From contig OZ116705.1 in the NCBI GenBank assembly GCA_964199315.1, positions 12,524,001 to 12,588,000 of the forward strand: a stretch of 64,000 bases of DNA. Reading direction: 5' to 3'. Positions 13,201-53,817 of this stretch are shown here, piece by piece. A model generated the notes under the pieces. The model was given only the letters and a program-made list of their open reading frames with translations, did not search any database and was not told where the DNA came from. Within the stretch, counting starts at the first letter, position 1; each line of letters begins with the position of its first letter. The DNA is from Orbicella franksi. Its lineage: Eukaryota. Position numbers and translations under genes: made by a program.

Positions 13201-14913
13201 TTTCCACCACAAACTCCCTTTTAGCAATCTACAATACTCCTAACTCAAAATAAAAGCCACTCACCAGATGCCGCAGCTCATTCAAATCCTTACACACTGA
13301 ATAAAATACACTCATGAGAAGCTGGCAGTATGCTTTGAAAAATTCCTCAGGATATGTTGCTGGGCAATCTCTTGCCATGATCTGCAGCACTTCAGTCTTT
13401 GAATAATCCAGAAAATGCATAACAATAGGCTCATAAAATCCTGTTCCGACTTGGAACTTCTCCCACACAATCTGACTTAGCAAGATCACACAGATATTGA
13501 GCTGCGTAAGCTCCTGAAGTCTTAAAAATGCAGGAAGCATGTTTGCCTCAATGTCTCTTAGTCTCTCTGCCTTGTCCAGAACAATGTAAAACGTTTCGTT
13601 TGCAAGGTCCTTTGATAAAAGGTTATGTTTCAGATGTCGCAAGAAGTCTGTCATGTTGTCGCATTTCGGTGAGGCAGTTAAATCATCTTCTTTGTCTGAA
13701 TCTTGCAACTGGTATAGAACATGTTCAAAAATCAATCTTGCTGTAAAGCTCTCCACACAATTCACCAATACATGTGGAAGCTGTATCGTTAAACAAAGGA
13801 AAGAAAAAGAGCAGTAAGAAATTTAGTCAGTTCAAACTCTCCCCTTTATATAACGTAAGTCAGGGCAAGGTCCAACATTGCAGTTTCCCAACATAGTATG
13901 ACGGGACGATAAGCCCCATTTATTTAGTTCTTGAGTTACAGTATCTCTATCTGTTGTTGTTAATTTAAGTGCTGTACATCACTTTCCCAAGTTTAGGCTG
14001 GAAATAAAAATATTGGAACACCCTGAGCTGTCCCAGATAAAGTGTTGCCTCTCTCTTTTCTGACCTCTCTAAACTGGATCAGTGTGGCAATTGCTCTATG
14101 ATCTGTCAGTTCTAGCCTGCCCATCGCCCCCAGAGGCATTTGTTGGGCATGCTCTCCAGTGGAGCCACTTCATTTATACAAATCCCCACAGTGTAGCTCT
14201 GGGAAGAATGCAAATGCCTGACCTATGGAAGAAGCCCAAAATTTTGGTGATTGGTCAAGATGCGGTGCGTTCCTTGTGGTATAGCGATTCCAAGCTAAAC
14301 ACAGAGAGTGGGACTTGGATTTGCTTGAAAGTGTAGGACTCCAATGAGGTTCATTAAATCAGTAGTTTTGTGTTGATAGCAATTAGGAAATTTACAAATA
14401 AAGAACAAAAGATGTAGTATTTTAAAAAGTGAACGATCAAAAAATATTGTTTTTGACAATGCACCATCCTAGGGCTGACTAGAGCTCTGTTATAGCAAAT
14501 ACCCTACCCTGGGGCAGGAAAAATTGTCAAATGACAGACAAATAAGCGGGCTTGGAATTGACCGAGCATTATATTTCATTTGATTACGATATTGAAGACT
14601 GAAATAGTTATTTTATAATATGCAATTTAAATCGAAAAAGCGTTAAAGAGGGTAAAACTCTCAAGAAATATTTCAACTTAATAAATTAAGTTTTACAAAC
14701 TCTCACCTCTAGATCTTTCAGCAAAGTTTGCACAAGAAAAGATTTCCCGGTAGCGGTGTGTCCACACACAAATATCGCAGGACAGGAATATGACTTCCTA
14801 TCTCCCAAAAGAGATAACAGTGTATCTATTTCAATCTTTCTGCAAATAACTTTGCTGTAAAGATTCTGCAGACTGTCTTTACTGTATCCTAAGAACCCAC
14901 CATTTGCCGCCAT
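10268..14913 (-). CDS. ORC5: Origin recognition complex subunit 5, 454 aa
   Basis: Exons 14913-14707, 13780-13265, 12747-12543, 11684-11499, 10518-10268, all GT-AG with matching phases (1365 nt). Walker [38 protein letters not shown] and C-terminal [10 protein letters not shown]...YLYDFV match ORC5. Confidence 0.97.
10752..11215. mobile_element. Kolobok-like MITE in ORC5 intron 4
   Basis: TTAA at 10752-10755 and 11212-11215 flank imperfect TIRs ggtcattcc / ggaatgccc. TTAA target with GG termini fits Kolobok rather than piggyBac. Confidence 0.7.
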
Positions 14914-16973: not shown

Positions 16974-19900
16974 ATGGCGTCCATGTTGTTCACGGCGGTG
17001 TATTTTCTCTTGATATCTTTGTGCCTAGCTGCCTTTACTCTCGCTTTTTGCTTTTTGGTCTACCTGCATCATAAACATAAGACACTTGACCACATTCCAG
17101 GCCCCAAACGGGACGGATTTTTGTGGGGAAATGTCAAGTTACTCCAACGCTTGAAAGAAGAGAACGACTTGAATGGATTTCAAGTCTTGAGACATCTGGT
17201 CCAAGAGCATGGCCCTGTCATGATTATTTGGATTTTTCATATCCCACTCGTCTACGTTTCAGATGCTGATATAGTCAAGAAAGTGCTTATAACGTCGAAT
17301 TTTCCCAAAGATGCCTGGTCTTACGATCGACTTGGCTATCTCTTCGGAGAGCGATTTATGGGGAAAGGGCTTGTTACGGAGACAGACCATGAGAAATGGA
17401 AGATCAAACGCCTTACAGTGAATCCTGCATTCCACAGGAAATACTTGAAGGAACTTCTGATCCAGTTTAACTCAAGTTGTGACGTGTTTTTGGCGAGGCT
17501 GACTGACTTAGCAGATGGAAAGACCGAAGTGAAAATGGCGGATGAGTTTAACAGAATTACTTTGGACATAATTGGAAAGGTAAGGCAAGAGTACATTTGG
17601 TAATGTTTCACAATTTGTTTTGTGATCTCAAATAATGACCCAGATGGGGACATTGTAAAACATGCACCCCCCTCCCCTCCCCCCTACAGAGGGCAGATTT
17701 CAGACAGCCCAGTTTTCTGTTGGCGACACCTTTGAAGTTTTCAACTGAGAGGTGCAAAATTATGTTGTCTCCTTTGAAAAAAATTCTCCAAGAGGCCCTG
17801 TGGTTTAGGTTGCCCTCCATAGGGAGGGGTTGGGGGTGTGGATAAAAAAGGGAAAGACAAGTGTACACATGCAAGGTGCAACACTGAAGAAACCACTTGA
17901 GATGAATGAATCTCTCCTCACAGATTATGCATCTGCAGCTAATTTGTCAGTTGTGTATACATCTACTGTATTATCAAAACATGATGAACAATAATTATTA
18001 TTGTATCAAAAGGAGTGAATTCTAGATGCACAAAAGCAGATCGTTTAATTATCATCATGAATTATCCAAGCACCCACAGATAAGCACCAGCCTGATGGGC
18101 AGCTTATCGTGTGTAGATTTCACCTTACCTTCCTTACATTATACATCAAGATGGATTATCCATCTCATTTTGTCTGTTTAAGTTCATTGGTCTAGATGCA
18201 CTAAAAGTAGACACTTCACCCTGACATGAAATTGATTTTGTGCCCATAGTTTTAGTGAGAATTTGCATTCATAATATTATTTTTGTAATCAGACACACCA
18301 AACAAAACTTGCCCAAGTTCATCCATGCCAGAGGGTGCTTTTCATTGCTACCCTTTGTGCCAAATTATATACAAAACTGTTGGTACACTGTCAGTTGACT
18401 GTTGGCTGACTCTCAGCCATCTGTCAGCCATCTATTAGATCTAATGGCTGTTTATCGGCATACTGTTTGGACTGTTGTTGTCAACTGCTTTTGAAAGGGA
18501 ACAATGACTCTGTGAGCCAACTACTTAATTAGTAACCCATCATATTGAGTAGTGGAGATAGTTTAGTTAAATTGGTCTATTTCTTTTCCAGGTGGCCTTT
18601 GGAATTGATTTAAATGCGATTGGTGACCCTGATTCTCCATTCCCCACTGCCATAAGGGAATGTTTAGCAGCCCCAATTTGGTGTCTATCTCATCCACTTC
18701 ATGCGATTGACTTTACAAGTTATGGCTATCAAAATTCAGTTGTGTCTGCAGTTCACTTCTTACGAGATACAGGAAAGAAAATCATTGATGAAAGAAGAAA
18801 AGCCTTGACAAATGAGGAAGAGGTGCCTTCAGATATTCTCAGTTATATCCTTAAGTCTGTAAATGAAGACACTGATCTGGACTACGAAGAACTGCTTGAT
18901 TACTTTGTCACTTTCTTTATTGCTGGTGGGTATTTCTTAATATTATTATGTACTCCACATTTTTCTTTATCTTTCAGTAGTAGCCACTCAGCTGAGTCCT
19001 GTTGGAAATCTGCAAATCTGATTGGTTCCATCATCGTTTTCTATTCACTGGTTGTCAATGATCTTGTGCATGCTGCTCTTGAACCTTGATCGTTCTTAAC
19101 TTTAGGCTCAAAAATACACAAAGTTGTAGGTTTGGTGAATCTGTAATCCTTTGCAGTGTCTACTTAAACTATTAGACAACTCACCCTTGTTTTCTATGAG
19201 TGCTACCCTTCATTGACTATTTGCCCATAGAAAAGTAGTCTGACCGATAGTTACATGTAAATATATAAGATTACATGTTGCAATTTAACTTACATGTACA
19301 TGTAGTCAGCAGAATCGTGTTTGACAGTTAAAATGTATCCTCCAGTTACACAACTGTTGCACGTGTGAGAGGAGTACATTAAAGATTGCAACATCGGTAG
19401 ATTTTTTTATATATATACTTAAAGATGATTTCTGGCCGTACTGCACAGTCTCAGCACCCTAATGTTTATAGAGATGATAAATCTCACTCAATGAATGCGA
19501 ATCGATGTTATTCATTACAAACCACATACCTTATCTTTGAGGACTTTCAAATTCTTTTTCCAAAAGCCTCATTGATTTTTACAGCTGTGAAGGTCTTTCA
19601 TCAAGTGATATGTAATGAGAAAGAAATGCAGCATAAAACTTTGACCGCTTTGTATCCATAATGGCGGTTGTTTTGAAACTTTGAATTTACCTCATGTAAG
19701 TACAGTTGCTGTAGTTGCAAAATGTTTACATTTTGTGATGTTTTACATGAAACAAAACAAAAAACGCAAACAAACTCTCAAGAGTGTGCAGTATGGACTG
19801 GAAATCATCTTTATACTTAATCAATTCAACAATGTACAAGTATTGCTATTTGAGTTGCTGCACTCCCAAGCAAACATCTTGAAGCAACTGCTTCAAGTAG

Positions 19901-21175
19901 ATAGGCGTAATAAAGTACAGACCATGAAAATGACTCAAGTGCAAGGCTGTTGCCTAAGGAAATTTTTAAGGAGCCCTTTGGGCTCCTTCCACCAAAAGTT
20001 AGGAGCCCAAGCCACTTTTTTAGGAGCCCAGATAAAATTCTCCGGGGGGGTGGGGAGGTTGAGGGGTCCTGGGGCAGAGATTTTCCGTGAGACACTAATA
20101 TGGTCTAATATCAATCAAATTTTATAAATAAAGCATTCAGCAAAGTGATCAGGTCATGACTGAGAAAGAATACTATTTATGGTCAAACTCAATAATTGGT
20201 GTATCCATGCAAGTGCTGCGGCTTTTTTTTTAATAAAAATTTATATTGCTGCCTTTGTTTTTGAGTTTTGCAATTCTATTTTAAAAAGACGAAATACATT
20301 GTACAAATCATGAAATGCAAGCTGCAAATGAAAACAAATAAAAATGAAAGAGGCATTTGGGAGGTTTGAATTTGGCCTCGCTGAAATGTGCGTTCCTTTC
20401 CCCGGGCTTGGGACATTAGTATAAACTAAAGGTGATTTTGAGGCAGCATGACGGCAATATTGGCCACTTCTTTGGAGAAAATAAATTCTTGTATATTGGG
20501 CGGAGTCGCGACAATTCATTTGATAATTTAAAATATAAAACCCTAGTATGCAGAGAGAATTGCAATGATGTGTTCTTTTTGCTGGCTAGTTACTTGAATT
20601 ATCTTTTCAGAACCTAAAGAAATTCATTCAGTACATCTAAGTGAAGTTTTCTTAAGTATTGGACAAATATTTAGACGCATTGATCTTTTTTCAACTGTAA
20701 ATATAATGTCAGCAGGATCATCACTCCAATTCCAAAAATATTTGTTATCAAAGTAGTTATTTTGCAACTTGGAATCAGTAAGGCATCAACAGAGACACAA
20801 TCCATTAGCATACATGATGTAAATATATTCAATACTGAGCTTGCAATGCATTATAGGGCGATTTTCAAATATGGCTGTTTTGGGCTGTTTGTGAGCAGAG
20901 AGCCCGGGGGGGTACTCTGGGAATTTCTGGGTGGGGATGTGCCGCTGGGTCCCTGGAGCCTTAGCCTATACCAGAGCTAGTTCAGCTGAATTTTGCTACC
21001 CTATACTAGAGTAAACTCCCCAAATCCCCCTATCTATCGACACTATTGCGGCTGATTTGCGTAAATTTAAACTTGCTGATTTGATTTTTTTTTTATATTT
21101 TTGAGTGGCAATTCCTGGTTTCCTTAGTCTAGAGAAAATCTTCAACCAACTAGTCAGTTTTGGGAAAAATGATAC

Positions 21176-21214
<39 letters not shown>

Positions 21215-22687
21215 CCTAGAGTAAACTGCTTGAAAACCATACCCTTCACAGCGGCACATACCTATATAGCCCATATGTGTTAGTGCCCACTCCCCCCACC
21301 CCCCCGGGGCGGAGAGAGACTTTTTTGCCGTGTTTTGGCCCAGATTTCTCGTGCTAAAAGCAAAACAGGACCAGAGTAGCTGTTGTTTTCCATTTAATTT
21401 GTTGTGTGAATGATTTTTTGACCGATTTCATGAGAAGATTGAAGTCGTCGGACAGATTACATGGGAATGAAAACTCCATGTTTAGGTGCCCACTCAGGCT
21501 CCTTGAACAAAACTTTAGTCACCCGCACTTGTAACTTAGGCGCCTCAGGCGATCGGGCGCCAGTGATGTTCATTTTCATCAAACAATGGCAACTATGAAG
21601 AGGATTAATGTATGTCTCCAATGTACTTTACAGGTCAAGAGACTACTTCCTCAACACTTTCGTTTATGTTAGCAGAGGCTGGAAAACATCCTGAGGTTGA
21701 GAACAGGTGATTTACCAATTATCAGACGAGTCCTTAATGATATTACTTTCATTTAGTGACAGGATCAAGAGGCTTAGGTTCAAGTGATTATCGGGATCGC
21801 CATGTTGTATTCTTGCACAAGACATACAGTAGCTCTCTCAGGTGTGGAGACATTACTGGTTTCCACAGTCTGTTTTACAGAAATCGATCAGATTTTTTAG
21901 AATGACTAGGAAACGTACGATCAAGAGGTCTACATGTAGGTTCAACTGCTCACTGGGATCGCTGTGTTGTGTTCTTGCGCACACAACAACACACAACTCT
22001 CACAGTATCTCTCTCAGGTGCAAATCCATACTGGTCTTCACTGTTTAACAGAAATCAGTCAGATTTTTCAGAATGACTCAGAAATCTTGGAAAGAGGACT
22101 TAAGGGAGTTAAAATCCAAAACAGGGACTATGAATATAGATTTTGACAGCTTCTTTTTTTCAATTCTCCTGTTTAGGTTAGTCCAAGAGGCTGAAGATAT
22201 CCTTGGTTCTCACCAGTATGTGTCATATGAGGACCTCAGCAATCTAAACTACACGGGTCTTGCGATGAAAGAAACACTTCGATTGCATCCCAGTGTTCCG
22301 GCATTCACTCGAGTTATGGAAAAGGACGGTGAGTTGGGAGGGCACCGCATCCCTGCTGGTACACTGATAAATGTTGGTGTATATGCCTTACATCACAGCC
22401 CCAAATACTGGAAGAATCCTGAGAACTTTGATCCCGAACGATTTTTGTCTCAGAAAGATGACAATGACACTGGCTGTGCAACACACCATGCTTATATTCC
22501 ATTCTCTCTTGGTCCTCGTCATTGTATTGGTCAGATGTTTGCCGAGTTTGAAGTGAAGGTTCTCATGTCACGCTTTTTGAAGTCATTCAAATTTCAGCTG
22601 GTGCGTGGCCAGGATTATGGATATGAAGATCCCAAGGCCACTCTAGCACCAAAAGACAGAGTCCGCTGTACCCTGACTTTGCGATGA
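16974..22687 (+). CDS. CYP46A1: Cytochrome P450, CYP46-like (cholesterol 24-hydroxylase-like), 507 aa
   Basis: Exons 16974-17579, 18592-18925, 21634-21706, 22177-22687 (1524 nt, phases 0,1,2). N-terminal membrane anchor, I-helix AGQETT, KETLR, DPERF, heme motif FSLGPRHCIG. IPGPKRDGFLWGN and GERFMGKGLVTE resemble clan 46. Family assignment, not proven orthology. Confidence 0.9.
20903..21308. mobile_element. MITE with CCCGGGGG termini and 8-bp TSD in CYP intron 2
   Basis: cccggggggggtact...ccccccccggg flanked by gcagagag / gcggagag (one mismatch). Confidence 0.8.
21761..22020 (+). mobile_element. Two tandem degenerate SINE heads in CYP intron 3
   Basis: ~170-nt tandem duplication. Each copy has ggttcaa..gggatcgc..tgttgt.ttcttgc..ctctctcaggtg, resembling the SINE at 39217. 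Confidence 0.55.
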
Positions 22688-30056: not shown

Positions 30057-32705
30057 ATGGAAAGCACTGAACAAGAGAAAGACAAACAAAATCCGGCTAC
30101 AGCCGAAGACCAAGACAATATGGCAGCAACAAGTGAGTTTGGATTTTTTTCTGCTTTCAATTTTAGTTTAACGAAGTTTGAAATGGAGTTTTTCGTTCTT
30201 TTAGCGGACACGCGAAGAATAGACACTTTGGCTCGGCCTAAACCAGTTCCAGTTGGATTTATTGAAGACAGGTAAGAAGTTAAGCCAATCTACCTTGTTA
30301 TCAACGCTGCGATTTTGTCATTTACTGCTGGATTATCAGAAATTGGGTATATGTAATGTCACTCTTGCCTTCTCGACTACAAAATCGGTAACATTCCTTC
30401 GTGTGTCTCTCGCTAATAAGTTCTGCTCATGAAACAATTGTACGTTTAGGGGTCAATTTGGTTAAATTGTCACTTGTAATCGATCACTGTTACACGTTGA
30501 TGCTTCACTAAATGAAGAACACTAGATTCGAATAAAATTATGCTTTGATTTTATTTAAGCCAGGCACATTTAATGAATTTCGTTTCAAGCTCGTAACATT
30601 TGCGACATACGTGCAATGTTTTCCATTATTTTGAGAAGACCGCATGCAGATTGAAATTCAATAACTTTTTGTTTCTTTATTTTTAGGCGATCGGTTTACT
30701 GGGATAACAACTTAGCGAAGAACTGGGATAACATAGAACCGACCAAGAGTGGTAACGTATATATTTTGTAGTTAACAAAAGTTATACAACCGAATGAAAG
30801 CCGATATCGCCAAATTATCGCAGCTCATGATCTGACATGTTAATTTTAATGGGGTTCATTCATGCAATCTTTAATTTATCGTTTGAAGAAACCACGAACA
30901 CCTATTATCATGATCAGGAACTGTTATTGAAATCAAGCATCGGTGGATAATATTCAGAGAGAAACATTTTCTGTGAGATTGAAACATTCACGTAAGATGA
31001 AGTTAGAGTATCATGATTTATAAAGTTTCACAGTTATTAATAATTAAGTAGTTGTGACAACTCATATTCCAAAACTGACATCGACAAAGTGGCTGACAAG
31101 TAAATGACAGGTAAATAATTTATCATGAAACAGAAGGCTAGAAACTATCCAAAATGCCGTATCTATAAATTGGGTTCATACAATTTCTATAAATATTTTC
31201 TGTAAAATAATGTGGTGCTTAGACAGATCAGTTCTAAAATACCCTTTATTTTTTGCACCAAATTCAACAGTGTTAAGTGAAAGACAAGCACAACTTGTGT
31301 ACAGCAAGCAACTTCACAAGGACTATGTTGGGGACAGGTGAGGATGTTCAAACCATTTGAAATCATCTTTGTAACCTGAGAATGTGGAGAACTATTCTAC
31401 TCACTAAGAATGGTTGATACATTATTGCTTTACAAGTTACATAAATAGTTACCTTGGCCCTGATCTCCTAGAGGAGAAAAAGGAATTCTAAAAGTAAGTC
31501 AAGACACAGTTTTATCAGTTGGCACGGCCTATTGTCTCAATTTGCCAAAACTCAAATAACTGAGATATTGTAGCAATTATTGTATGTTTCAGTTTGTTGT
31601 TTTTGTTAATCTCATTGTGAGGGCAAAAAGGGGCTTGGGTGATTCCCAAGTGAAAAGTTTGGGGATCTTCATTGGCTCACTTAGGAGTGTAAATCAGAGA
31701 TGTTGGTCTCAATTAGAGTGTGTCATGACCAGATGAAACACCACTATATCTATAGCCATCAAGGTATCTTTTAGGACTGCACTCAAGATCAGAGAAAAAA
31801 AAGAAAACAAAATAATGGTTTTGTCCATTCTTAAGACAGGTATCTTTTAGGGGTCAAATGAGGCTCAAGGCATTCAAGGGGTTTAATTCAAATTTTCTAA
31901 TGAGCATCCCTGCCCTTTTCAACCCTTTTTCCCCTTCCCTTGGGTGTACCTTCCCCAAGACTACAGCCCAGCTGGGATCTAACCAAGACTTGCACAAATG
32001 AGTGTATACTGTATTAACAGTGCTTGTAACAGTTGGCCATTGGACTTCCACCCCCTTAAAGGAGGGATGTAGGGTCTTTTGTTTTGGTTGTCGCACTCAT
32101 ATTTGTTACAGATCATATTTTTTGTGTGTGTGTTCAACAGACGAAGCGCTATATGGCCAGTCAGTGAGGCAGCAATGAAAGCTTCAGCATCAGGGCGAGT
32201 TGAAGCCCTGTCAGAACCGAAAGCACTTCATCAAGACTACCAACCATGTAGGCAAGTCCAAACAGCCGTCAGTGAGGCAGCAATGAAAACAGAACCCTCA
32301 CAACGTATAGAGTTTCTTGCACAAGCCAAAACTTACGCTCCTTTAAAAATCAAGTCAAATAGTGATTGGGATTGGAGCGAATGGGAATCTGATTTAACAG
32401 AAGCTGCAAAGAATGGAACAGCATCAGAAAGAGTTCTTGTTCTTTCAAATCCCAAGCAGCCACATCGCAATTACAATGAAGGGCGTCCTGTGATCTGGGA
32501 AGTGTCACAGTCAGCCCAAAAGGCACTTCCGTCTCTCAGAGTTCAGCAGCTCGCAAGACCAAAGAGCCGAAGTCAATACAACGAGGATTACGATGCAAAT
32601 GCGTGGAAAGTCTCACAAGGAGCGAAAGTGGCTCAAGCCACTCCTAGAATTGTAGAACTTGCACTACCAATTCCTCGAAAAGTTAGAAGTAAAAAGGTTG
32701 CTTGA
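30057..32705 (+). CDS. THEG: THEG-repeat (testicular haploid expressed / SPMAP2-like) protein, ~279 aa
   Basis: Exons 30057-30132, 30205-30271, 30687-30751, 31271-31337, 32141-32705 (840 nt, consistent phases). Repeated W.VS.AA..A..S.R...LA.PK units (RIDTLARPK, RVEALSEPK, RVQQLARPK, RIVELALP). Family-level call. Confidence 0.85.
31630..31945. mobile_element. Degenerate MITE in THEG-like intron 4
   Basis: Ends in ggggtttaattcaaattttctaatgagcatccc; a fragment of the same motif occurs at ~9692. Termini eroded. Confidence 0.35.
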
Positions 32706-40060: not shown

Positions 40061-42880
40061 ATGACAACTGCTTCACCTTCACCCCTGGCCAGCTCTGTAG
40101 AAAAGACAAATGGAGCCAAGCTGAGCAGACTTCTTATTGATGGTGGAACTCAGGTTTTACGGAATGTCTTTGACAACTACCAACCTCCTGCAAAACTTGC
40201 TGCTGATCTCAATACCAGTTATTCAATTCTTAACAATCTCTTGCGTCGAAGAATCCTCAACATACTTCATTGGGACCAGCTGTTCCCTCCAAGTGGAGCC
40301 GCACCAGACTCCAACACTTTTGATATTACTCTTATATTCCTCCTTCTGGCCAACTTTTGTGGACTATCCCCTCCCCCGTTAGGTTGGCACACTATCCCCT
40401 CCTGCAACTGACACTTCCCTGGAGGCAAACCTCGCACGCATTAAGTTGTTCCGCAACGAGTTGTATGGTCATGTGTCTACCACTGGTGTCGATACACCAA
40501 CGTTCAATGCTCTCTGGCAGGAAATTAGTGCTGTTCTTCTTGCTCTTGGGCTGGATCAGGCAGAAATAGATAGATTAAAGGCAGAGAGCTTTGGAGAGAA
40601 AGATTATCTTGACGTGCTACTAGAATGGGCTGATAGTGAACAAGAATTCAAATCACAGCTGAAGCAACTGCGTCAGTTTCAGACTGAGACACGACAAGAT
40701 ATTGCGAAAGTCCTTCAGCATCAACTAGAAGATCGCAAAACTCTTGGAGGTAACTTTCCTAAGCTGGAGGAAGGTTATCGGATTGAAAACGAAACGCATC
40801 AAGCTACCAAGGAAGTTCGTCAGACTCAACTAGAGGACCACAAAACACTTCAGGACAGCATTTCCAAATTAGAAGGTGTATTCCAGACACAAATCAGAAC
40901 TCATCAAGCTGTTGAAGACGTGCACGAGGCTCTTCAAGCAGGTCTCCAAGAAGTCAAACAAGAGAATGAAGACTTAAAGAGAAAAAGACAGATGGATAGG
41001 ACAGATGATTTACTAAGGAAACTAACTATGTCCGAGTTCAAAGGGGACATTGAATACCATGCACAAAGATTCCAGGAGGGAACCCGTGAGTGGATCTTTA
41101 AAAGAGTCGAGGACTGGCTAGATGACAGAACGTCCCAAAACAGGGTGATGGTTGTCAGTGGCAATGCGGGCACAGGAAAATCTGTTATCTCTGCAGTGAT
41201 TTCCCAAAGAATGCAAGAAGCCGGAAGACTGTCAGGGAACCACTTTTGTCAGCATAACAATGCGCGTTACAGGAAACCTCAGTTGATGCTTCAGTCCTTG
41301 GCCTGTCATCTGACTTACACTTTACCAGAGTACAAGAATGCTCTTGTGGAACAGCTATCAAGAAATCTGGGAGTGGACCTCAACAGCATGGGCGTGGAGG
41401 AGCTCTTTGCCTTGCTTTTTAAGGAACCAATCAGCAGGGTGGGCGACCCAGGAAGAAACATCCTTATGGTCATAGACGGCCTAGACGAAAGCGAATATCA
41501 AGGACGAAATGAGCTGCTCGATGTGATTGCCAATCAGTTTTGGAAACTTCCACAGTGGATTCGATTTTTTGTGACAACCCGAACGGAAATAAACATTGCA
41601 GACAGCCTGAAACACTTGCAACCCATTGAGCTTCAAGAAAATCAGGAAGAGAACTTAAGAGATATTCAGATATTCTTTGAAATGCAACTGAATCATGAAA
41701 TTGAAGAAGAGTACAAAGATGTTCTCTTGAGGAAACTTCTTGAAACATCCGAAGGCGTCTTTCTTTATGCTTATTTCCTGATCGATTTCATCAAAAAGAA
41801 TGTTTCTCTTCTCAACCCAGAACAGTTGGAGAGCAGCTTACCATTGGGTATTTCATCAGTTTCATCAGATCTGGTGATCTGCTGAGCGTGCTAGACATTG
41901 AAGAGCGACCTTACAGTTTAGGAACCTGTGTGGGGCAGTCCCTTGTGGCCATTGGTTTATGGGGTAGATTGAAATTCGTGCATGTCGAGCTACCAAGGGT
42001 CAAGGACTCCGAAGGGAGGAAAGGTTTGTAATGCCTCCATATCCAGGTAAACTGCTACGAATGAATTCATGACAATAGCATAATCTTAAAGTACACCCAT
42101 GATCAAATTCTCGATATCCATTTTTTTTACATTTTCGTACACAATAGGTCTTTCCTAGACACCTTGCCAAATTCCAGTCTATTACGAACATTAGAACTCG
42201 CGTTTTTTGGACCTTTATTTCGGAGAATTTACGGCCGCCATTATTTTTCCTTGTTCCAAGTCTTGGTTGAGAATTTGAGTAAATGACGTCATTTTCTCAA
42301 AAATACCTCACGGGTCGAAATTATAATAACAATTAATACTGCAATTCCCATAAAGAATAACAAAAACTTTGGCTCTTATATTCGTGCAATTTTCTACTCT
42401 AATTGTTATTGCAATTTCAACCCGTGCGGTATTTTTGAGAACCTTGACACGGAAACCTTTAGTTTATATATTTCCTTGAAATCTTTCTGTGAGCAAAACC
42501 CAAGCTGCTAAGCGTTAAAAAAAATTGTTCACGAGTACTTTCTCGATTGCCCATGTTCAGATAGATATAATCAGCCCCGAGGGTTCCACTTGCTACGCAG
42601 TTTTTTTCGTTGAGGATCTCGGCTGTTGGGAGCAACGTGACGAGTCACAACGAAGTGGGAAGACTGACGTGAAAGGGCAAGACTGACGCTTGTTCACAGC
42701 CGTCTCTTTCAGGAGGGATAACCTTAAATCTGAGTATAAATCGAAATAGCCTCCTTTCAAGGTGTTCTTGGTCATCACCTTATTACGTGCAGTACTTTTG
42801 TACACACGGGTTAGAGTGTCAGGTTTACTGATCACTTCATGCCTCAATCTTTTCCAGGTTCCTTTACCAAGCACAGGTGA
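40061..42880 (+). pseudogene. Disrupted HEPN-coiled-coil-NACHT-(WD40) gene, copy A
   Basis: Paralog of 47409-53817. A +1 frameshift near 40400 gives a stop at 40411. NACHT Walker A GNAGTGKS and Walker B VIDGLDE are intact. At ~41862 the sequence jumps to the last WD repeat out of frame (stop 41885). Donor 42023 and terminal exon 42858-42880 are retained. Confidence 0.9.
42294..42441. mobile_element. MITE with ~41-bp TIRs in the copy A intron
   Basis: tctcaaaaatacctcacgggtcgaaattataataacaatta pairs with taattgttattgcaatttcaacccgtgcggtatttttgaga (4 mismatches). Confidence 0.75.
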
Positions 42881-45260: not shown

Positions 45261-46474
45261 GTTATTTCTTAGTCAAGCGCAATCGCGCGGATCCAACCAT
45301 CAGTCACGTCTTTAATTTACTTTTAACGGAGCGAGACATCAAAAATGCAAATGTGGTCAGTCAGGATATTAACTGTACGTTCCATCCCACAGGGCTTGCC
45401 ATACCTATTCTAGATCGTTCTAACCGACAGCGGAAGAGGCAACAAGCACAGAATAGCTTGGAGACATCCACAGGCCATGGGACAAGCACAGATACCTAGA
45501 AAGGATGATTGTACCCTGGAGGAGACTGCATAGGATTCTTAAGGTAACACTGGCGTTGCTCTCGGTAACCTGGTTGAATGTTTTCTTTTGCCGGTCAATA
45601 CCTTTGTGATTATCATACATATTTCCTCTTAAAGCTTGGTTTAGACTTTAATTGAAACGCATCTTCGAAACATTTTCTTTTCCATTTTACCTGGCCTCTA
45701 GTTGGACGAGGTTCATTTGAAAAGTGGATAAAGTTGATAACAATCACTGAGAAACGATCATCTCAAGGAATTAAATATATTTGGTTGGCATGTCCACGAC
45801 ACAGACATTATCTCATGCATGAGCAAAATACTTGTAAATGTCCACGTCTTTGACGTTACCGCATTAGATAGATAGTAAGAAATGCATGAAACACAGTGAG
45901 AGCTGATCAAGAGACTGTGAAATTATAGAGAATTTGGCTTCCCCAGTAAAACAGCGAAAACGAGTGTTAAAACCATAAAGCTATAGCATGTTAAGGCGTT
46001 TCTCAGAATGCAAACTATGCATTTCTGCATGATTTAAGCAGATGAGACTTTTAATTCGCCTTTATTACATCCTAATGAGCTAAGATGCTTCTCTGGAGAT
46101 GTGTGAATAGTTCGAAGGAATCGAACAAGGTATCGTGTAGGACACAAAGAGTAGTCGAATTAAATTACCAGTTTGTGAACATAATTGGAATATTTAATTT
46201 ATGCACAAATGAGCTAGGATGATCGACAGTGCATGTTGATGGCAGCTGCATCAAATAGATTTAATTACGTACTCTTGAGTTTGTTTGGTACCTCAAAGTT
46301 GACAAAGGCCATCTTTACTTCATGATTTCGATTGCATGTAAAGACTCCGGTACATCTAAGGAGTCTGACTTTTTTCAATAAAGACTTCATTCATACATTC
46401 ATGCATATTAGAGTCTATGTTCATGGCTCAGTTGCATTGAACAAATTCAATTACGTACTCCTGAGTTTGTTCCG

Positions 46475-46953
46475 TACACTCTTTTTTTCTATAAGAATAT
46501 TGTTTTTGCAGTCGAAGCTCAATATTCTTGTTTTTCTGCCCATTTTAGGCTGAAATATTCTTGTGAATATTATTAGATTATAGTGTATGACATTTCTGTT
46601 TTCGAATGTATTTGGTGTCTGGATGGTGTTAAAGTGATTTTGGAGCCAGCCTGCAGGCATTAAAACCTGATATCACGCGCAGGACTTCTTGCAGAAATGT
46701 TATTAGCATCGAACATACGACTAGTGCTGTTTTTGTTGCGTTTTGGAAAGTTTTGCCATTTAGAGAAAGAAAGAATTTCATACGGTTTAGTTTAAAAAGT
46801 TTAATTGTTTTGTGTTTACAAATTTTCACAACACAAAATTGTATTCTTTTCAAAATCTCAGGCTCGAGAATATTCTGAAAATATTCTTAAAATTCCGCGA
46901 TTTCAGCCTGGATATTCTTATAAAACATAGTCTTATAAGAAAGAAAGAGTGTA
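46475..46953. mobile_element. TA-targeting MITE inserted in one copy of a ~190-bp tandem repeat
   Basis: TIRs tacactcttt..tataaga / tcttataagaaagaaagagtgta. The empty site ttggTAcctcaaag is preserved at 46289-46290. Confidence 0.85.
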
Positions 46954-47119
46954 CCTCAAAGTGGACAAAGCCCATTTATTTAACTTTTACACCGTGATTT
47001 AGAAAACCTATACCTGTGAATTTAGAAACTACACGCCACGTAGGGACTGTGTTGCAGGGTATAGTCAATATCAATATTTATGTGACAAACATAATGTTGA
47101 CAAACGAGCGAAAACCTTA

Positions 47120-47275
47120 CTTCTCGATTCTTTTGAATTCATATTAAAATAAGGTTGCCTAACCAGGAGAGAATCAAAATATAAAATACTACGTGCTTGG
47201 GGATCGGAGCCGTCGAAGGTTGGGTCCCGGCACTTGATTTCAATCGTCTCTATTATCTTTCTTCTGAGTCTGATG
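47120..47275 (-). mobile_element. Highly decayed Penelope GIY-YIG C-terminal fragment
   Basis: Minus frame RRKIIETIEIKCRDPTFDG resembles the RK.KEAI.I....P..NRD.G tail of the Penelope endonuclease. Confidence 0.4.
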
Positions 47276-47408
47276 ACCTCCATTGCAGTGATACTTGTAT
47301 TTTATTTGAAATTCTGAAAATGGCGAGATTAATCACTAACACTTTGTTGCCTACTAATTTAGATTCCGTATCATTAAAGAGGCTGCCTAATTGCATCCAG
47401 TCACCTCA

Positions 47409-50400
47409 ATGGCAGCTGCTGTACCGTCGCCCCTAGCTAGCAGCGTAGAGAAGACAAATGGAGCCAAGCTGAGCAGACTTCTGATAGATGGCGGAACAAC
47501 GGTTCTGAGGAACGCTTTTGATAACTACCATCCTCCTGCAAATCTGGCTGCTGATCTTAACGTGCAATATAAAACCCTGCTAAGCCTCCTGCGTCGACGA
47601 ATCCTCAATAAATGTCAATGGGAAAAACTGTTCCCTTCTAGTGGAGCAAAGCCAGACTCCAACTCTTTCGACATCACTCTTCTATTCTTGCTTTTGACCA
47701 CCATTTGTGGACTATCCCCTCCTCTTTCAGGTTGGCACACTAAGCCACCTCCAAGTGAAACCTCATTTGAAGCAAATCTTGCTCGCATTAAGTTTTTCCG
47801 CAATGAATTGTATGGTCATGTGTCTTCCACTGGTGTTGATACTCCAATGTTCAAGGCCCTGTGGCAGGAACTTAGTGCTGTTCTTGTTGCTCTTGGGCTG
47901 GGTCAGGCGGAAATTGATAGATTACAGGCAGAGTGCTTTGGAGAGGACGATTACCTTGACGCGTTAATTGACTGGGCTGCTAGTGAACAAGAAATGAAGT
48001 CAGAGCTGAAAGAGATGAAACGAGATGTTAAGAAAGTACTTCAAACGCAGCTGGAAGATCGCAAAACTCAACACGAAAGTAATTTCAGGTTGGAGCAAGT
48101 GCATGAGATAGTGAACAAGACCAATCAAGCCGTCAATGAGGCCTGTCAGACCCAAGTAGAAGTCCACAGTTCACTTCAAGATACTTTCTCAAAACTGGAT
48201 GAAATTCATCAAATCGAAAACAAAACCCATGACGCCCTAAAAGAAGTACGTCAGACCCAACTAGAAGACCACAAAACACTTCAGGATGGCGTTTCCATGT
48301 TAGAGGGAATATCCCAGACCCAAACCAAAACTCAGCAAGCCGTAGAAGACGTGCACGAAACTCTTGAGGCAGGTCTCCGAGAAGTAAAACAGGAGGTAGA
48401 GAACTTGAAGAAGAAGCGTGAGGTGGACGGAGCAGATGAATTGCTAAGAAACCTTGCTAAGTCCGAGTTCAAAGGAGACATTGAATACCATGCAAAGAGA
48501 TTCCAGGAAGGAACCCGTGAATGGGTCTTCAAAAGAGTTGACGACTGGCTAGATGACCGATCTTCCCCAAACCGAGTGATGGTAATAAGTGGAAGTGCAG
48601 GGATGGGAAAATCAGTTATCTCTGCGATCACATGCAAACGAATGCAAGAGGCTGGTAGACTTTCAGGGAGCCACTTTTGTCAGCATAACAATGTACGTTA
48701 CAGGAAACCTCAGCTAATGCTTCAGTCCTTGGCCTGTCATCTCAGTCGCGCTCTACCAGAGTACAAGAAATCTCTCGTGGAACAGCTGTCAAGAAATCTG
48801 GGCCCGGTAGACCTCAACAACATGGGCGTGGAAGACCTATTCGCGTTACTTTTCAAAGAACCACTTAACATTGTAGAAGACCCGGGAAGAAATACCCTAA
48901 TGGTGATAGATGGACTGGACGAGAGTGAGTATCAAGGACGTAATGAGCTTCTCGATGTGATTGCAAATCAGTTCTCCAGGCTTCCTCAATGGATTCGATT
49001 TTTTGTGACAACCCGATCAGAAATTAACATCGCAGACAGCCTGAAGCATTTGCAGCCCATACATCTTGATGAAAATCAGGAAGAGAACTTGAGAGACATT
49101 CGGTTTTTCTTTGAAATGCGGCTGAGTCCCAAGATTGCGGAAAAGCAAAAAGATCTTCTCTACACGAAACTGGTTGAGAAGTCTGAAGGCGTTTTTCTTT
49201 ATGCTTATTTCCTGGTAGATCACATCCAAGAGAATGTTCCACTTCTCACCCTTGAGCAGCTAGAGAGCATTTTACCGTTGGGTATTTCGTCCGTTTATCT
49301 TTCCCATTTCAAACGGTTAGAGAATGAACTTCGCAAAGAGCTGAAGATGGACGAAGACCAAGTAATGAAGTTTTTGTGTGCCTTTACCGTTTCAAGAGAA
49401 CCAATGCCAATAGCGTTTGTTTCAAGACTATTAAACCCTGGTGGAAAGTCGTTGTCTGCTCAACGAAGAATAAACAGAGCAATCGCCTGCATCTCTTCCC
49501 TTTTACCGATTCGCAATGATTGTCTTCACTTTTTCCACAAATCGATCAAAGACTGGTTGACGAACACCTTGTGCTATGGACGACATGATTTCATCGTGGA
49601 CGAGAAGGAAGGCCACGAGATTCTCTTCGAACTTTGCAGGAATGAGCTTGACAATATCAAGCGAAAGGCTGTACATGATTCCACCTTCAGTGACACTGAA
49701 AGGTACGCCTTGCAACATGGTGTCCAGCACATGATTGAGCTGATCGGATTGGGTGAAAGTCCAAGACCTTGTAATGTAGAAGAGCTGATTAATGCGTATG
49801 TGACCGATTTGGAGCTCATTTATGCCAAACTTTGTGTGAACAACACGGCTTCCTCTGAGGATATTTCCAGTGTTCAAAAGTACATTAAGCCAACCTTGCT
49901 CAGTGAGCCAAGTCAGTCTCTTTTAATTTCTTTGATAAAAGTGCTTAGAAAACACTCTTATTTGTTAAGAGAACATCCCCTACTTTGGTTCCAAAGTGTG
50001 ATCAATGACGGACCTCCTGAGCTATCATCTGAAGCCGCAACCATCCTCGAAAACAGGCTTCCCACTGTGCCGTACTTTAAATACTTAAACAAGAAAGAAG
50101 AAAATGGAGCAGTTCAAGCCCGATTTTACTGTTCAGACACGGTGGCGTGTTTTGATGTTTCACCTCAAATGGACTACGTGGTGTGCGAATGCCGCGATGG
50201 AACAATCCACTTGTGGTCTCTCGAGACTGGTAACTTGGAATGGAGCCGACCTTCGTTAATTGATAGAGAGTTTCAATATGTGCATCCTAAAGGTGATGTA
50301 GTTCGTGATGGAGGCGCGTATCGTAGAATAAATTCTAGAATTCTGACATTTTACCGTTCTGTGGTTTTTCATCCAAGTGGTATGTCTGTTCTACCGGGGA

Positions 50401-53400
50401 CCCTCAGAAGTGCTTATAGTCTCGAAGGAGACTGCAATTCCCTTTATCCTGATAGTAACTGCACATTTTCACATTGTGCTTTTCCTACAGACAAAAAAAC
50501 CATTTTGACAGACCGTTTTGATGATCCAAAGGAAGTTGTTTTGTGGAGTATGGAAACTGGCCAAGAGCTAAGGCGCATAGCTTGGAGTGACGTTATTACA
50601 TCTTTTGCTATTTCCCAAGATGGTTTACAAATTGCTTTTGCTGACGTGACTGGTTCCATCTACCTTGATGTGGCTGAAGGACAAAGACAACATTTGTTGA
50701 AGTGCGACGTGGCATGTGGTATGATGCACTTCACACAAGACAACAAGGCCCTTGTCTGTGGTTACCTCTCTTATAGGATAGAAGACGGCATCGGATATGG
50801 ACAGTTTGGTTGGGTGTCTTACCGCAATCCGGTGTTGATCCTTCGTCGACTCAAAACTACCTTTCCACCTCCACGTGGAGTAGACTTCGTCTTGTGGCCC
50901 ATTGAACAAAAGATCCAGGCTGGGGAATATGTTTTCGATGACGGTTTACTCTTGGGCAGGGTAAAAAACGTGCACAGTGTTTTTCCATCGTTAGAAACAG
51001 GATTCTACAAATGGCTTGATAATGGAACAGCATTGGTTGGTAGCCCATCGTTCAAGTACGTCGCGGCAATTCATGTTGGCTCGCTAAGTAAAGTGAATTA
51101 TGCTTTCGCCAGACAAGTGGTCGAAAAAGTTGTATTTTCTTCTGAAGGAGATGTCATTTATTCCATTACCTCAAAAGATGAAGGTAGTGCCAGTGCGGTT
51201 CTAGTGACCGTATTCCGAATGTCAAGTCGAGAAATCTTGGTGGAAAAGTCTTTCACTTGCCCATCACTGTCGCTTGTCCCCGTGAAGGAAGGTGTTGTAC
51301 TATGTTTGAAGCATAAAGTACCCGAGCTTTGGAATTTTGAGCTGACCGAGTGTATCCGACAAATTCCCAAACTAAAGGGAACTGAAAAGCTTATTCGTTT
51401 ATCAGATGAGCTGATAGCCTGTGAATGGTACCGTCGTATAATAACACCTGAAGAATTATCAGATTTTGGTTATCCATCAGAGATAGAGGATTCCCTGGAA
51501 CTACGTGCGGAAGATGACTCAATTGAAGAAAACGAAGCTCTACATCTCGCTAACTTCACCGATGAAGAAACTTCAGACGATTCATCAACGACAGACTCTT
51601 CTGCAGAATTCAGAGATTTTGTGATTAAAACATTTAATCGTTTATTCCTTGCGCTTTTTGTGGACATCGTCAACGTTACCAGTGGAGAGTGTGTTTCATC
51701 TATAAAGGCAAGGGTTTGCCCCAACGACGATGCATTTGTTTCATGCAATAGTCAGAACCAGCTGCTAGTTTGCAACTGCGAGGAATTAGACGATGACTTT
51801 TTTGAGGGGGAACAGTTAACCCTTAGTTTAAGAAACAACAACTCCTCTTCCTGTGTATGGAAAAGAAAAGACGAGCGGTACGACACTCGTTCTTTTACGC
51901 CATATTTCATGTTCTCCCCTGATGGAGAATTTGTAGTGACGTGGGCTTCCTTCAGTTCAGGCTATGGAGTGCACATTCTTGATGCAAAAACTGGAGAAAC
52001 ACAACGCACCTTGCTCAAAGACCAAGATGACATTGTTGATTGTAAGTTCGTTGTTAATTGCGAGTCTCTGGTTTGCTGCAGTAAGGACAACTTCCTTCGA
52101 TTGTTTAACATCAGGTCTGGTGATCAACTCAGCGTGCTAGACATTGAGGAGCAACCCTGCTGTTTAGGAGCCTGTTTGGACAAGCCTCTTGTCGCCATTG
52201 GCTTATGGGGCGCCAGATTGAAATTCGTGCATGTCGAGTTGCCAGGTGTCCAGGACTCTGAAGGGAAGAAAGGTGAGAAATCATGGCTTCATGATACTGT
52301 TCTGAGTGATTTCTTTTGGCCAGTTCTATCATGTATGGCTGATAAATAGGTAGTTAGCCTGCGTCGCAGACAGTCTAAACCAGTAGTATAGTCCGTCTGG
52401 GCAAAGGTTCCCGGGAGCTTGTTCCGATGTCCCGCAGTTTTGCAGGGATATGTGTATCCATTTCTGATTGGCTAGTTGCCTACGCGTGGTTAAAGTCTTG
52501 CAAAATCGATTGCTCAACTCGCGCAATGCCAAAAATGAATTTGTGTTTAGTTTTCAGGAGTAGGCAATAAGCACATTTGTACGGTATTAACACATCAAAA
52601 CTACCTTGAGTTGGAAGTAAGATGTCTGCCGTTACAGAAGAAAGTTGACAAAAAGCATTCAAAGCCGTGAAAGAGAAGTTTGAAACTGATTATCTTGTAC
52701 CTGAACAGAAAAACACTCTTCGCGAATTTCTTTGAGGTTAAAATATCTTTGTAAATTTGGCGACAGGCTACGGTACATCTTTGATTTTCCAGTGCCTCCG
52801 GATCGCTGCAGATTCTCTGTTCGAGAAGCCTCGTGGCTACAATGTTCTCATTGTTATATCGCCATTACGATTACTTATGGAAGACCAGATTCGTCATCTT
52901 GAAGATCTGGGAGTGCCAGCGATCGCATTTCGGTGTGAAAATTAATGGGGTTGACGGGCCTACAAAACTTCTAAGATTCGTGGCATTTGTGCATTTGCCG
53001 TTCTCTTTTAATTTTCGCTCTCTCGACCTCTCTTTGTTTCATACGTGTTTCCGAAGGGCACATCATACTCTGTTATTAGGATTAATGTTCTGTACCGGTA
53101 GAGTCGTTTGATTTTGCTTTAGCAAATTTTATAGAGGTCATAGGTCTTCATGGTTACCGCTCATATCTGCATGTTGCTTCGCAGAGTCTGACCATTCAGT
53201 AATTTGCATTGAGCTTATATTATGTTTAGGCTCATTTCTACTCTAAGATAAATTTGAAGGTTTCGAAGTATTGGTTTTCGAGGGGAAAAGGTTTCAACAA
53301 CTATTCTGCTTAATTCATGTATTTGACTGAAGTTACCATCTGTTTTATATCAATTGCAAGGCTAACATTATCAAGTAAACCCAAAACCCCAACATGTATA

Positions 53401-53817
53401 CATACATGACTAAAGAACTTCCTAATGATTGCCAAGAACACCTCGGAAGACTGCTAGTTTGATTTAAACTTAGAATCCAGGCGATCCCTGTTGAAAACTC
53501 TCTGAGGACAGGTGACAAGAAAAACGTAGGTCTTACCTTCTGATTTCAGTCTGTTCTTTAATCCTGATAAATTTTGTCCTGGTGTTTCAGCTCTACTCCC
53601 GTCATTATATCAAAGTTTATTTTTACCGCACTCTTTCGAAAAGAAATTCGATAACGTGTCTAGAAGAACCTCAGTCCCGAATATGTATGTATTATTATGG
53701 GCACTCAAAGCCTTGGTCTGCAATTTTCAAACGTTTAGCTGCAGCTTGGGTTCTACTCGCAGTCACTACATGTACATGTTTCTGTCTTTTGCAGGTTCCC
53801 TTACCAAACAGAAGTGA
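47409..53817 (+). CDS. HEPN (DZIP3/hRUL138-like)-coiled-coil-NACHT-WD40 STAND protein, copy B, ~1628 aa
   Basis: Coding exons 47409-52272 and 53795-53817. N-terminal RLLIDGG...FDITLLFLLL..ICGL...GW domain with RNELYGH (47799-47819). Three 35-aa coiled-coil repeats. Walker A GSAGMGKS (48591), Walker B MVIDGLDE (48900). C-terminal WD-like repeats (IHLWSLETG, VVLWSMETG, LRLFNIRSG). Splice to the mini-exon is supported by conservation in copy A. Confidence 0.9.
52355..52945 (+). mobile_element. Decayed Academ-like transposon 5' end with RecQ-type helicase fragment, in the copy B intron
   Basis: Starts tagcctgcgtcgcagac. Frame from 52622 has three stops and reads NIFVNLATGYGTSLIFQ...VLIVISPLRLLMEDQ (RecQ motifs I and Ia, Walker K replaced by T). 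Confidence 0.75.

Follow-up and report, generated by a model that had tools for sequence, protein, structure and literature searches.

An intact HEPN-NACHT-WD40 gene of the coral Orbicella franksi and its candidate role as an RNase-type immune receptor

Does the gene at positions 47409–53817 of the DNA considered here encode an animal immune receptor that carries its own ribonuclease (RNase)? The locus was studied within a 64-kb stretch of the 497-Mb genome assembly of the coral Orbicella franksi. This stretch is referred to below as the window, and positions not given in Mb are counted from its first nucleotide; the gene and all of its features lie on the plus strand. Our analysis confirmed that the gene is real, intact and transcribed, and that the N-terminal domain of its product is a HEPN domain of the DZIP3 family. 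This domain is followed by a repetitive linker, a STAND P-loop NTPase and a region predicted to fold into two WD40 propellers, an order that would correspond to an effector, a coiled-coil spacer, a switch of the NACHT clade and a sensor. We see an even chance that the product acts as a cytoplasmic receptor of the STAND type, in which WD40-gated, NTP-dependent oligomerisation pairs the HEPN domains to cut RNA.

Proteins of this kind have been described before. Anantharaman et al. 2013 reported HEPN domains of the DZIP3 family fused to NACHT, CARD, DEATH and leucine-rich repeat (LRR) domains and expanded in Nematostella and oyster, and suggested that HEPN is tied into an RNase L-like or antiviral response by way of the NACHT and DEATH modules (PMC3710099). 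HEPN_DZIP3 was the commonest non-LRR partner of NACHT across nine cnidarians, with 17 proteins in Orbicella faveolata (Emery et al. 2021; PMC8260672), and the HEPN_DZIP3-NACHT family was also found in other corals (Noel et al. 2023; PMC10236652). In the pearl oyster family, for which a motif logo is available, the Rx4-6H motif is conserved with Asn after the Arg (Takeuchi et al. 2022; PMC9646362). The catalogued proteins have been put forward as RNase-type immune receptors (PMC3710099, PMC8260672, PMC10236652, PMC9646362). The gene in the window belongs to the same family as these anthozoan and bivalve proteins and shares their N-terminal HEPN-NACHT architecture, with nothing essential that differs. 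Neither the architecture nor its expansion in anthozoans, the present species among them, nor the hypothesis of an RNase L-like response is new to the literature. An earlier interpretation of the same DNA, made from the letters alone (the sequence-only reading), had likewise treated the architecture as previously noted and had been aware of no biochemical characterisation; the four studies bear out the former statement, and our literature searches, which found no biochemical work on the HEPN_DZIP3-NACHT family, agree with the latter. What is added here is the exact gene model, the coiled coil of 35-residue repeats, the predicted double propeller with its acidic insert, the selection acting on each domain, and a haplotype divergence that is restricted to the sensor.

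Gene model and transcription

The open reading frame spans 47391–52349; its first ATG lies at 47409 and is preceded in frame by a TAA 19 nt further 5'. RNA contigs from three libraries, one of them polyA-selected, were used to establish presence and splicing of the transcript. A 5' untranslated region (5' UTR) exon has its 3' end at 45512–45543, from where contigs of two libraries join to ~47363, and one RNA contig extends 477 nt 5' of the 45543/47363 junction. Intron 1 lies inside the 5' UTR at 45544–47362 and is bounded by GT (45544–45545) and AG (47361–47362). It is followed by a large exon of 4910 nt (47363–52272) that contains the start codon and codons 1–1621 and is colinear with a polyA-RNA contig over 47795–52274. 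RNA contigs are colinear with the window to ~52273 and then match ~53795 onward (in three libraries, contig ends at 52274 match 53797 onward), and with GT and AG at the respective ends this defines intron 2 at 52273–53794. The splice-site sequences fit this assignment, with AAG/GTGAGA at 52272/52273 and a polypyrimidine tract and CAG/G at 53794/53795, and the independently assembled spliced transcript L018 has the same junction. The last coding segment (53795–53817) encodes G-SLTKQK and the stop codon TGA (53815–53817), beyond which the 3' UTR begins; it is supported by the RNA contigs, by L018 and by a RefSeq relative.

The spliced product comprises 1628 amino acids (aa) and ends in EGKKGSLTKQK. 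The RefSeq relative, XP_020604980.1 from Orbicella faveolata (“uncharacterized protein LOC110043815”), is 99% identical and has an identical C-terminus, as does L018, and relatives from Montipora and Oculina carry a similar short C-terminal tail. Almost the whole protein is thus encoded by a single 4.9-kb exon, as the sequence-only reading had claimed. The positions given in that reading for the start codon (47409), for an RNELYGH motif (47799–47819) and for the end of the gene (53817) are exact, the last of these being the true stop according to the RNA splicing. Spliced mRNA contigs of the gene were present in RNA libraries from several studies. A literature search on LOC110043815 and XP_020604980 found no paper.

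A longer open reading frame of 1646 aa is obtained from the genomic DNA because the frame reads into intron 2, which gives a spurious tail of 25 aa. Three proteins in metagenome catalogues (P0001, P0121 and P0124; 1646–1652 aa) end in 25 residues that correspond to the translated intron (52273–52349). These catalogue versions are artefacts that arose when genes were called in prokaryote style on coral DNA with its introns still in place.

Domains of the encoded protein

The N-terminal domain (aa 44–178, positions 47538–47942, within a folded unit of ~aa 13–189) matched the Pfam model HEPN_DZIP3 (PF18738, the DZIP3/hRUL138 family) at E = 1.8e-43 and 148.2 bits (cut-off 27), covering profile positions 2–137 of 144. 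An AlphaFold2 model computed with 60 diverse family members as input was confident and all-helical, with a predicted local distance difference test score (pLDDT) of 90.9. When this model was compared with solved structures by VIA-align, the best match was the HEPN domain of Csm6 (4rgp_B; Z = 7.8 over 111 residues, root-mean-square deviation 3.5), and AbiF was found at Z = 6.4, scores that are modest for helical bundles. The top 50 also contained two more Csm6 structures, Roquin, the sacsin HEPN domain, LsoA, HepS, AF_0298, Swt1, RnlA and SO_3166. About 15 of these 50 rows are HEPN proteins, with HEPN RNases foremost, a clear overrepresentation of a single superfamily. Foldseek returned no match at E ≤ 0.001 for the HEPN model against the PDB, and a PDB sequence search with the domain found no solved structure of the HEPN_DZIP3 family. 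Against the AlphaFold models of Swiss-Prot, the sole real matches were mouse and human DZIP3 (hRUL138), whose homologous HEPN domain (PF18738; residues 380–562) aligned with template modelling (TM) scores of 0.80 and 0.78 and 26% identity. DZIP3 differs from the coral protein in the rest of its architecture: it has no STAND NTPase or WD40 region but TPR and RING domains, and acts by ubiquitination.

Within this domain, the Rx5H motif RNELYGH (aa 131–137, positions 47799–47819) holds the putative catalytic residues R131, N132 and H137; in Rx4-6H motifs the Arg is usually followed by a polar residue (N, D or H), here N132. R131 and N132 were each present in 118 of the 120 top homologs (48–100% identity) and H137 in 114. 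Among 60 diverse HEPN_DZIP3 domains (39–79% identity), the corresponding counts were 57 for R131 and 58 each for N132 and H137. All 17 intact paralogs in the O. franksi genome, the window gene included, keep R-N-x(3-4)-H, either as Rx5H or as Rx4H. By comparison with HEPN RNases, in which Rx4-6H motifs build a composite site at the dimer interface (PMC3710099; PMC13017515), the domain is a probable RNA-cutting domain.

The HEPN domain might instead work without cleaving: as a sensor or tether it would bind RNA or a nucleotide, and the protein would be an RNA-responsive scaffold whose output comes through partners of the WD40 propellers or of the oligomer. This would agree with the closest characterised relative, DZIP3 (TM 0.8), for which the literature gives a function as a ubiquitin ligase that binds RNA, with the wording of Noel et al., who call the coral domains ‘RNA-binding DZIP3-like HEPN’ (PMC10236652), with the frequent use of WD40 propellers as platforms for protein interaction, and with our literature search, which found no RNase activity reported for the HEPN_DZIP3 family. 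However, R-N-x(3-4)-H with the typical Asn after the Arg is kept in ~95% of the family members and in every one of the 17 paralogs, much as in HEPN families with catalytic activity (PMC3710099), and the domain occupies the N-terminal slot in which STAND proteins hold their effectors. We consider a non-cleaving HEPN unlikely.

The linker between HEPN and the NTPase (aa 190–360, positions 47976–48488) showed self-similarity at a lag of 35 residues and a hydrophobic period of 3.47. Its repeats of ~35 residues, equal to five heptads each, are degenerate and were detectable at the protein level only, as Tandem Repeats Finder reported no array in the underlying DNA. Among relatives, the spacing from HEPN to Walker A ranged from 106 to 499 aa and often changed in steps of about one repeat. 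Judged by these sequence features, the linker is a coiled-coil spacer, the length of which varies among relatives.

The following STAND P-loop NTPase of the NPHP3_N/NACHT type (aa 368–536, positions 48510–49016) matched Pfam NPHP3_N at E = 8.6e-28 and 98 bits (cut-off 24.8). The NACHT model (PF05729) reached 24.0 bits at aa 389–551, slightly below its cut-off of 26.7, and many homologs carry a PF05729 match in precomputed data; the NB-ARC model stayed below threshold. A PDB sequence search with the NTPase region gave nothing useful. In a language-model feature search, which we treat as a lead only, the module adjoined fungal NPHP3_N/NACHT and HET-E clusters. The nucleotide-binding motifs are intact, with Walker A as GSAGMGKS (aa 395–402, positions 48591–48614), Walker B as LMVIDGLDE (aa 497–505, positions 48897–48923) and sensor-1 as TTR (aa 534–536, with R536 as the sensor-1 residue). 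The remainder of the STAND module (aa 537–888, positions 49017–50072), putatively made up of helical, lid and winged-helix segments on the basis of motif conservation and weak Pfam matches, contains GVFLYA (aa 594–599) and the conserved, putative winged-helix motif FFHKSIKDWL with His710. TANC1-type models matched aa 579–746 below their cut-offs (AAA_lid_TANC1, E = 0.02; HTH_TANC1, E = 2e-4). Walker A, Walker B, sensor-1, GVFLYA and the His710 motif were each at least 95% conserved among 113 homologs, and the Walker motifs are kept in all 17 paralogs of the own genome.

For the C-terminal region, Pfam propeller and WD40 models gave partial matches at aa 910–1084 and aa 1422–1600. The single-repeat Pfam WD40 model remained below cut-off, which indicates that the repeats are divergent. 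An AlphaFold2 model of aa 870–1621 was all-beta with ~59 strands (pLDDT 74.8), in keeping with seven-bladed propellers made of four-stranded blades, and Foldseek matched it to tandem WD propellers at E = 3.8e-23 to 1e-18, including Apaf-1 at ~1e-18. The C-terminus is thus modelled as a double propeller of the WD40 type (aa 889–1610, positions 50073–52238), with a predicted disordered acidic insert at aa 1351–1412 (positions 51459–51644). The Pfam scan of the protein found no LRR match. With NACHT followed by a predicted double WD40 propeller and no LRR, the protein is NLR-like (NACHT-WD40 type) and lies outside the strict definition of an NLR.

The domain content proposed in the sequence-only reading, namely an intact R-x5-H motif, a coiled coil, a NACHT ATPase with intact Walker A and B motifs and a long WD40-like C-terminus, was recovered in full. 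A profile search, as suggested there, placed HEPN_DZIP3 and NPHP3_N above cut-off, NACHT slightly below it and WD40 as partial matches. The assignment of the N-terminal domain to HEPN was upheld by both the profile match and the HEPN-like predicted fold.

Gene family, selection and sensor divergence

A search with the HEPN domain among 1.84 billion proteins retrieved 1857 clusters (50% identity), 914 of them at E ≤ 1e-10. The full-length protein had 1592 relatives, and all named ones are scleractinian. Identity was 80% to Montipora, 64–67% to Oculina and ~50% to Pocillopora and Porites. The nearest named relatives outside Orbicella are thus from Montipora, ahead of those from Oculina, which departs from the usual split between Robusta and Complexa; this pattern could reflect gene loss, incomplete annotation or birth-and-death sampling.

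The O. franksi genome contains at least 107 HEPN_DZIP3 matches. About 25 of these are long single-exon HEPN-NACHT-WD40 genes, with three tandem clusters (C5, 6.42–6.65 Mb; C6, 7.22–7.38 Mb; C8, 12.56–13.01 Mb), and 16 intact paralogs besides the window gene each consist of one long open frame of 1187–1945 aa. In a maximum-likelihood tree, the outgroup sampling of which was biased towards the query, each tandem cluster was essentially monophyletic, and the window gene stood apart in a clade with other coral genera. Many other HEPN_DZIP3 matches lie in open frames of only 220–300 aa. These frames may encode HEPN proteins without further domains, or else be first or other exons of different architectures. 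Such short frames bear on the idea that HEPN serves as a homotypic adaptor, comparable to CARD or PYD: the oligomer would recruit other HEPN_DZIP3 proteins, and mixed HEPN dimers would carry the activity or the signal. The large number of matches, with perhaps many solo HEPN proteins among them, the abundance of HEPN-only proteins in oysters as well (PMC9646362), and the fact that HEPN domains act as dimers (PMC13017515) speak for this idea, but heterotypic pairing is not known for the HEPN_DZIP3 family and the short frames may be first exons of larger genes, and we hold an adaptor role to be decidedly improbable.

A truncated and frameshifted paralog lies 5.4 kb upstream of the window gene (40061–42025, plus strand). 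It was detected by tblastn at 70–76% identity, and its pieces matched Pfam HEPN_DZIP3 and NPHP3_N. It corresponds to aa 1–113, then has a frameshift inside HEPN, continues with aa 113–629 and jumps to aa 1568–1622, so that ~940 aa including the WD40 sensor are missing. This element, which sits in tandem with the intact gene, is either a pseudogene or a fragment of a gene, and the family follows birth-and-death evolution of the kind known from immune receptor families.

Selection was estimated as the ratio of nonsynonymous to synonymous substitution rates (dN/dS; pairwise Nei-Gojobori) over the 17 genes, i.e. the window gene and its 16 intact paralogs. The rough values obtained were 0.19 for the N-terminal helix, 0.23 for HEPN, 0.32 for the coiled coil, 0.14 for the NTPase, 0.20 for the helical region and 0.38–0.45 for the WD40 region. 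The borders used within the latter (aa 881–1290, 1291–1345 and 1346–1620) were chosen before the structure was modelled and match the propellers and the insert only approximately. HEPN and NACHT are clearly under purifying selection, and the WD40 sensor is clearly the fastest-changing part of the protein. The sequence-only reading would have been refuted by an N-terminal domain that fails to match HEPN or by a motif not conserved under purifying selection across paralogs; both points were checked and neither refuted it, the Rx4-6H motif being retained in 17/17 paralogs within a domain of dN/dS ~0.23.

Divergence between closely related sequences was likewise concentrated in the sensor. Among cluster members with at least 90% identity, 4 of 888 positions before the propellers differed from the window gene, compared with 75 of 733 positions within them. 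In codons 1–1061, the public contig L017 showed no synonymous difference from the window at 700 synonymous sites and 4 nonsynonymous differences, whereas codons 1062–1621 (positions 50590–52272) had dS = 0.13 and dN = 0.052 (dN/dS 0.39), with a sharp boundary near codon 1062. The spliced transcript L018 shares the divergent sensor of L017, but the divergence starts at ~codon 860 (codons 889–1061: dS 0.096, dN 0.043, dN/dS 0.45). A local maximum of the sensor at codons 1141–1200 comprised 20 nonsynonymous and 8 synonymous differences, still with dN/dS <1. RNA contigs differed at 11 nonsynonymous and 4 synonymous sites, a sample too small to interpret.

That the divergent WD40 haplotype represents a second gene copy was rejected, as the assembly contains no second copy of the divergent sensor and its best match there is the window gene (94%). 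Either at least three haplotypes exist at one locus (window, divergent and recombinant), or the sequences derive from a close relative and an assembly chimera. The data suggest divergent sensor haplotypes and fit recombination between old sensor alleles.

These patterns also bear on a housekeeping role outside immunity, in which the protein would be a scaffold resembling NWD1, NPHP3 or TANC with a ciliary, cytoskeletal or RNA-metabolic function and the expansion would be neutral birth-and-death. The NPHP3_N match of the NTPase and its weak TANC1 lid and HTH matches, the relatives of the window gene lineage in Montipora, Oculina, Pocillopora and Porites, the transcripts in many unrelated RNA libraries and a dN/dS below 1 throughout would all be in line with such a role. 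Against it stand traits of genes engaged in conflict, i.e. tandem clusters, dozens of paralogs, decay of an adjacent pseudogene, rapid change of the sensor, and sensor haplotypes that have diverged deeply while effector and switch stay invariant. We assign very little probability to a housekeeping function.

Mode of action, known counterparts and neighbouring genes

In the preferred reading of an RNA-cutting receptor, the propellers would keep the NTPase closed, ADP-bound and monomeric in the resting state. A ligand on the propellers would allow nucleotide exchange and oligomerisation of the NTPase. The oligomer would then pair the HEPN domains, two R-N-x4-H motifs would form a composite metal-independent RNase site, and cleavage of cellular or viral RNA at this site would shut down the affected cell. 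STAND NTPases oligomerise once their repeat sensor engages a ligand, and it is from such analogies that we infer that the protein would cut RNA, would become active on dimerisation, would respond to a ligand of its WD40 region and would serve in immunity. The sequence-only reading, which had proposed the same course of events, is partly supported: its predictions that can be checked in the sequence all hold, and its functional core may hold by analogy.

Several known systems resemble parts of this scheme. RNase L and Ire1 share the proposed logic only, in that a ligand on the sensor leads to self-association and to a composite HEPN RNase site. They belong to the KEN-type HEPN family, however, with a kinase or pseudokinase domain as the switch in place of the STAND NTPase of the coral protein, while the sensor consists of ankyrin repeats that bind 2',5'-oligoadenylate (2-5A) in RNase L and of the lumenal domain in Ire1. 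The Pfam scan of the coral protein found no kinase, KEN or ankyrin match, which places it outside the RNase L/Ire1 group. Apaf-1, vertebrate NWD1 and the fungal HET-E/NWD proteins likewise place a sensor of WD40 propellers behind a STAND NTPase, but the effector is CARD in Apaf-1 and HET in HET-E as opposed to HEPN here. The bacterial Avs and bNACHT proteins also have an enzymatic effector built onto a STAND chassis, and differ in being prokaryotic and in using other sensors; in the publications considered, HEPN occurs among the bNACHT effectors as a predicted type only. RAZR is a HEPN RNase activated by higher-order assembly (PMC13017515), but RAZR and HepS (PDB 9oik) are bacterial and lack a STAND NTPase. 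Our literature search found no assayed HEPN-STAND fusion.

A number of points weigh against an RNA-cutting, proximity-activated receptor or limit the case for it. DZIP3, on which the family was founded, is an E3 ligase known to bind RNA, and the literature search revealed no RNase activity for any DZIP3-family HEPN. The Z-scores of the VIA-align matches fall short of what would be decisive for helical bundles. A homodimer prediction with two copies of aa 1–190 gave no answer (score 0.00), which speaks neither for nor against binding. The coiled coil of 170 residues could dimerise the protein constitutively, which would be a poor fit to simple activation by proximity. With regard to selection, dS between paralogs was 1.1–1.3 and thus close to saturation, so that the dN/dS values are rough and only the ranking of the domains is reliable. 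Finally, dN/dS of the sensor was below 1 in every comparison, among paralogs and haplotypes alike, and hence provides no direct signal of positive selection.

A broader extension of the RNA-cutting reading, to which we lean less than halfway, is that the logic of bacterial Avs and bNACHT defence has been kept in animals. The coral protein would then be a ligand-gated HEPN RNase, activated by oligomerisation, with a direct killing or silencing effect on infected cells that needs no adaptor signalling. While effector and switch stay invariant, the WD40 sensor would exist in deeply diverged allelic forms, and balancing selection or recombination would maintain these, as happens for immune receptors of fungi and plants.

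If the RNase activity proved true, no NLR-like receptor of an animal would have been demonstrated earlier to have its own nuclease, bacterial STAND defence would be mechanistically linked to metazoan innate immunity, and corals would gain an antiviral or cell-suicide pathway of the RNase L type. As HEPN-NACHT is among the commonest non-LRR NACHT architectures in anthozoans and oysters, a single biochemical result would annotate hundreds of genes. The locus is a handy test case, being almost single-exon, intact and expressed, with a defined putative catalytic motif and clear domain borders. The present finding is the correct annotation of a member of a published family and not a discovery, and offers a good experimental candidate that will not surprise a specialist.

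Three further coding pieces were observed in the window. An ORC5-like exon encoding an AAA/lid segment is located at 13229–13768 on the minus strand, three exons of a cytochrome P450 gene at 16974–22687 on the plus strand, and THEG (testicular haploid expressed) repeats in an open frame at 32079–32705, also on the plus strand.

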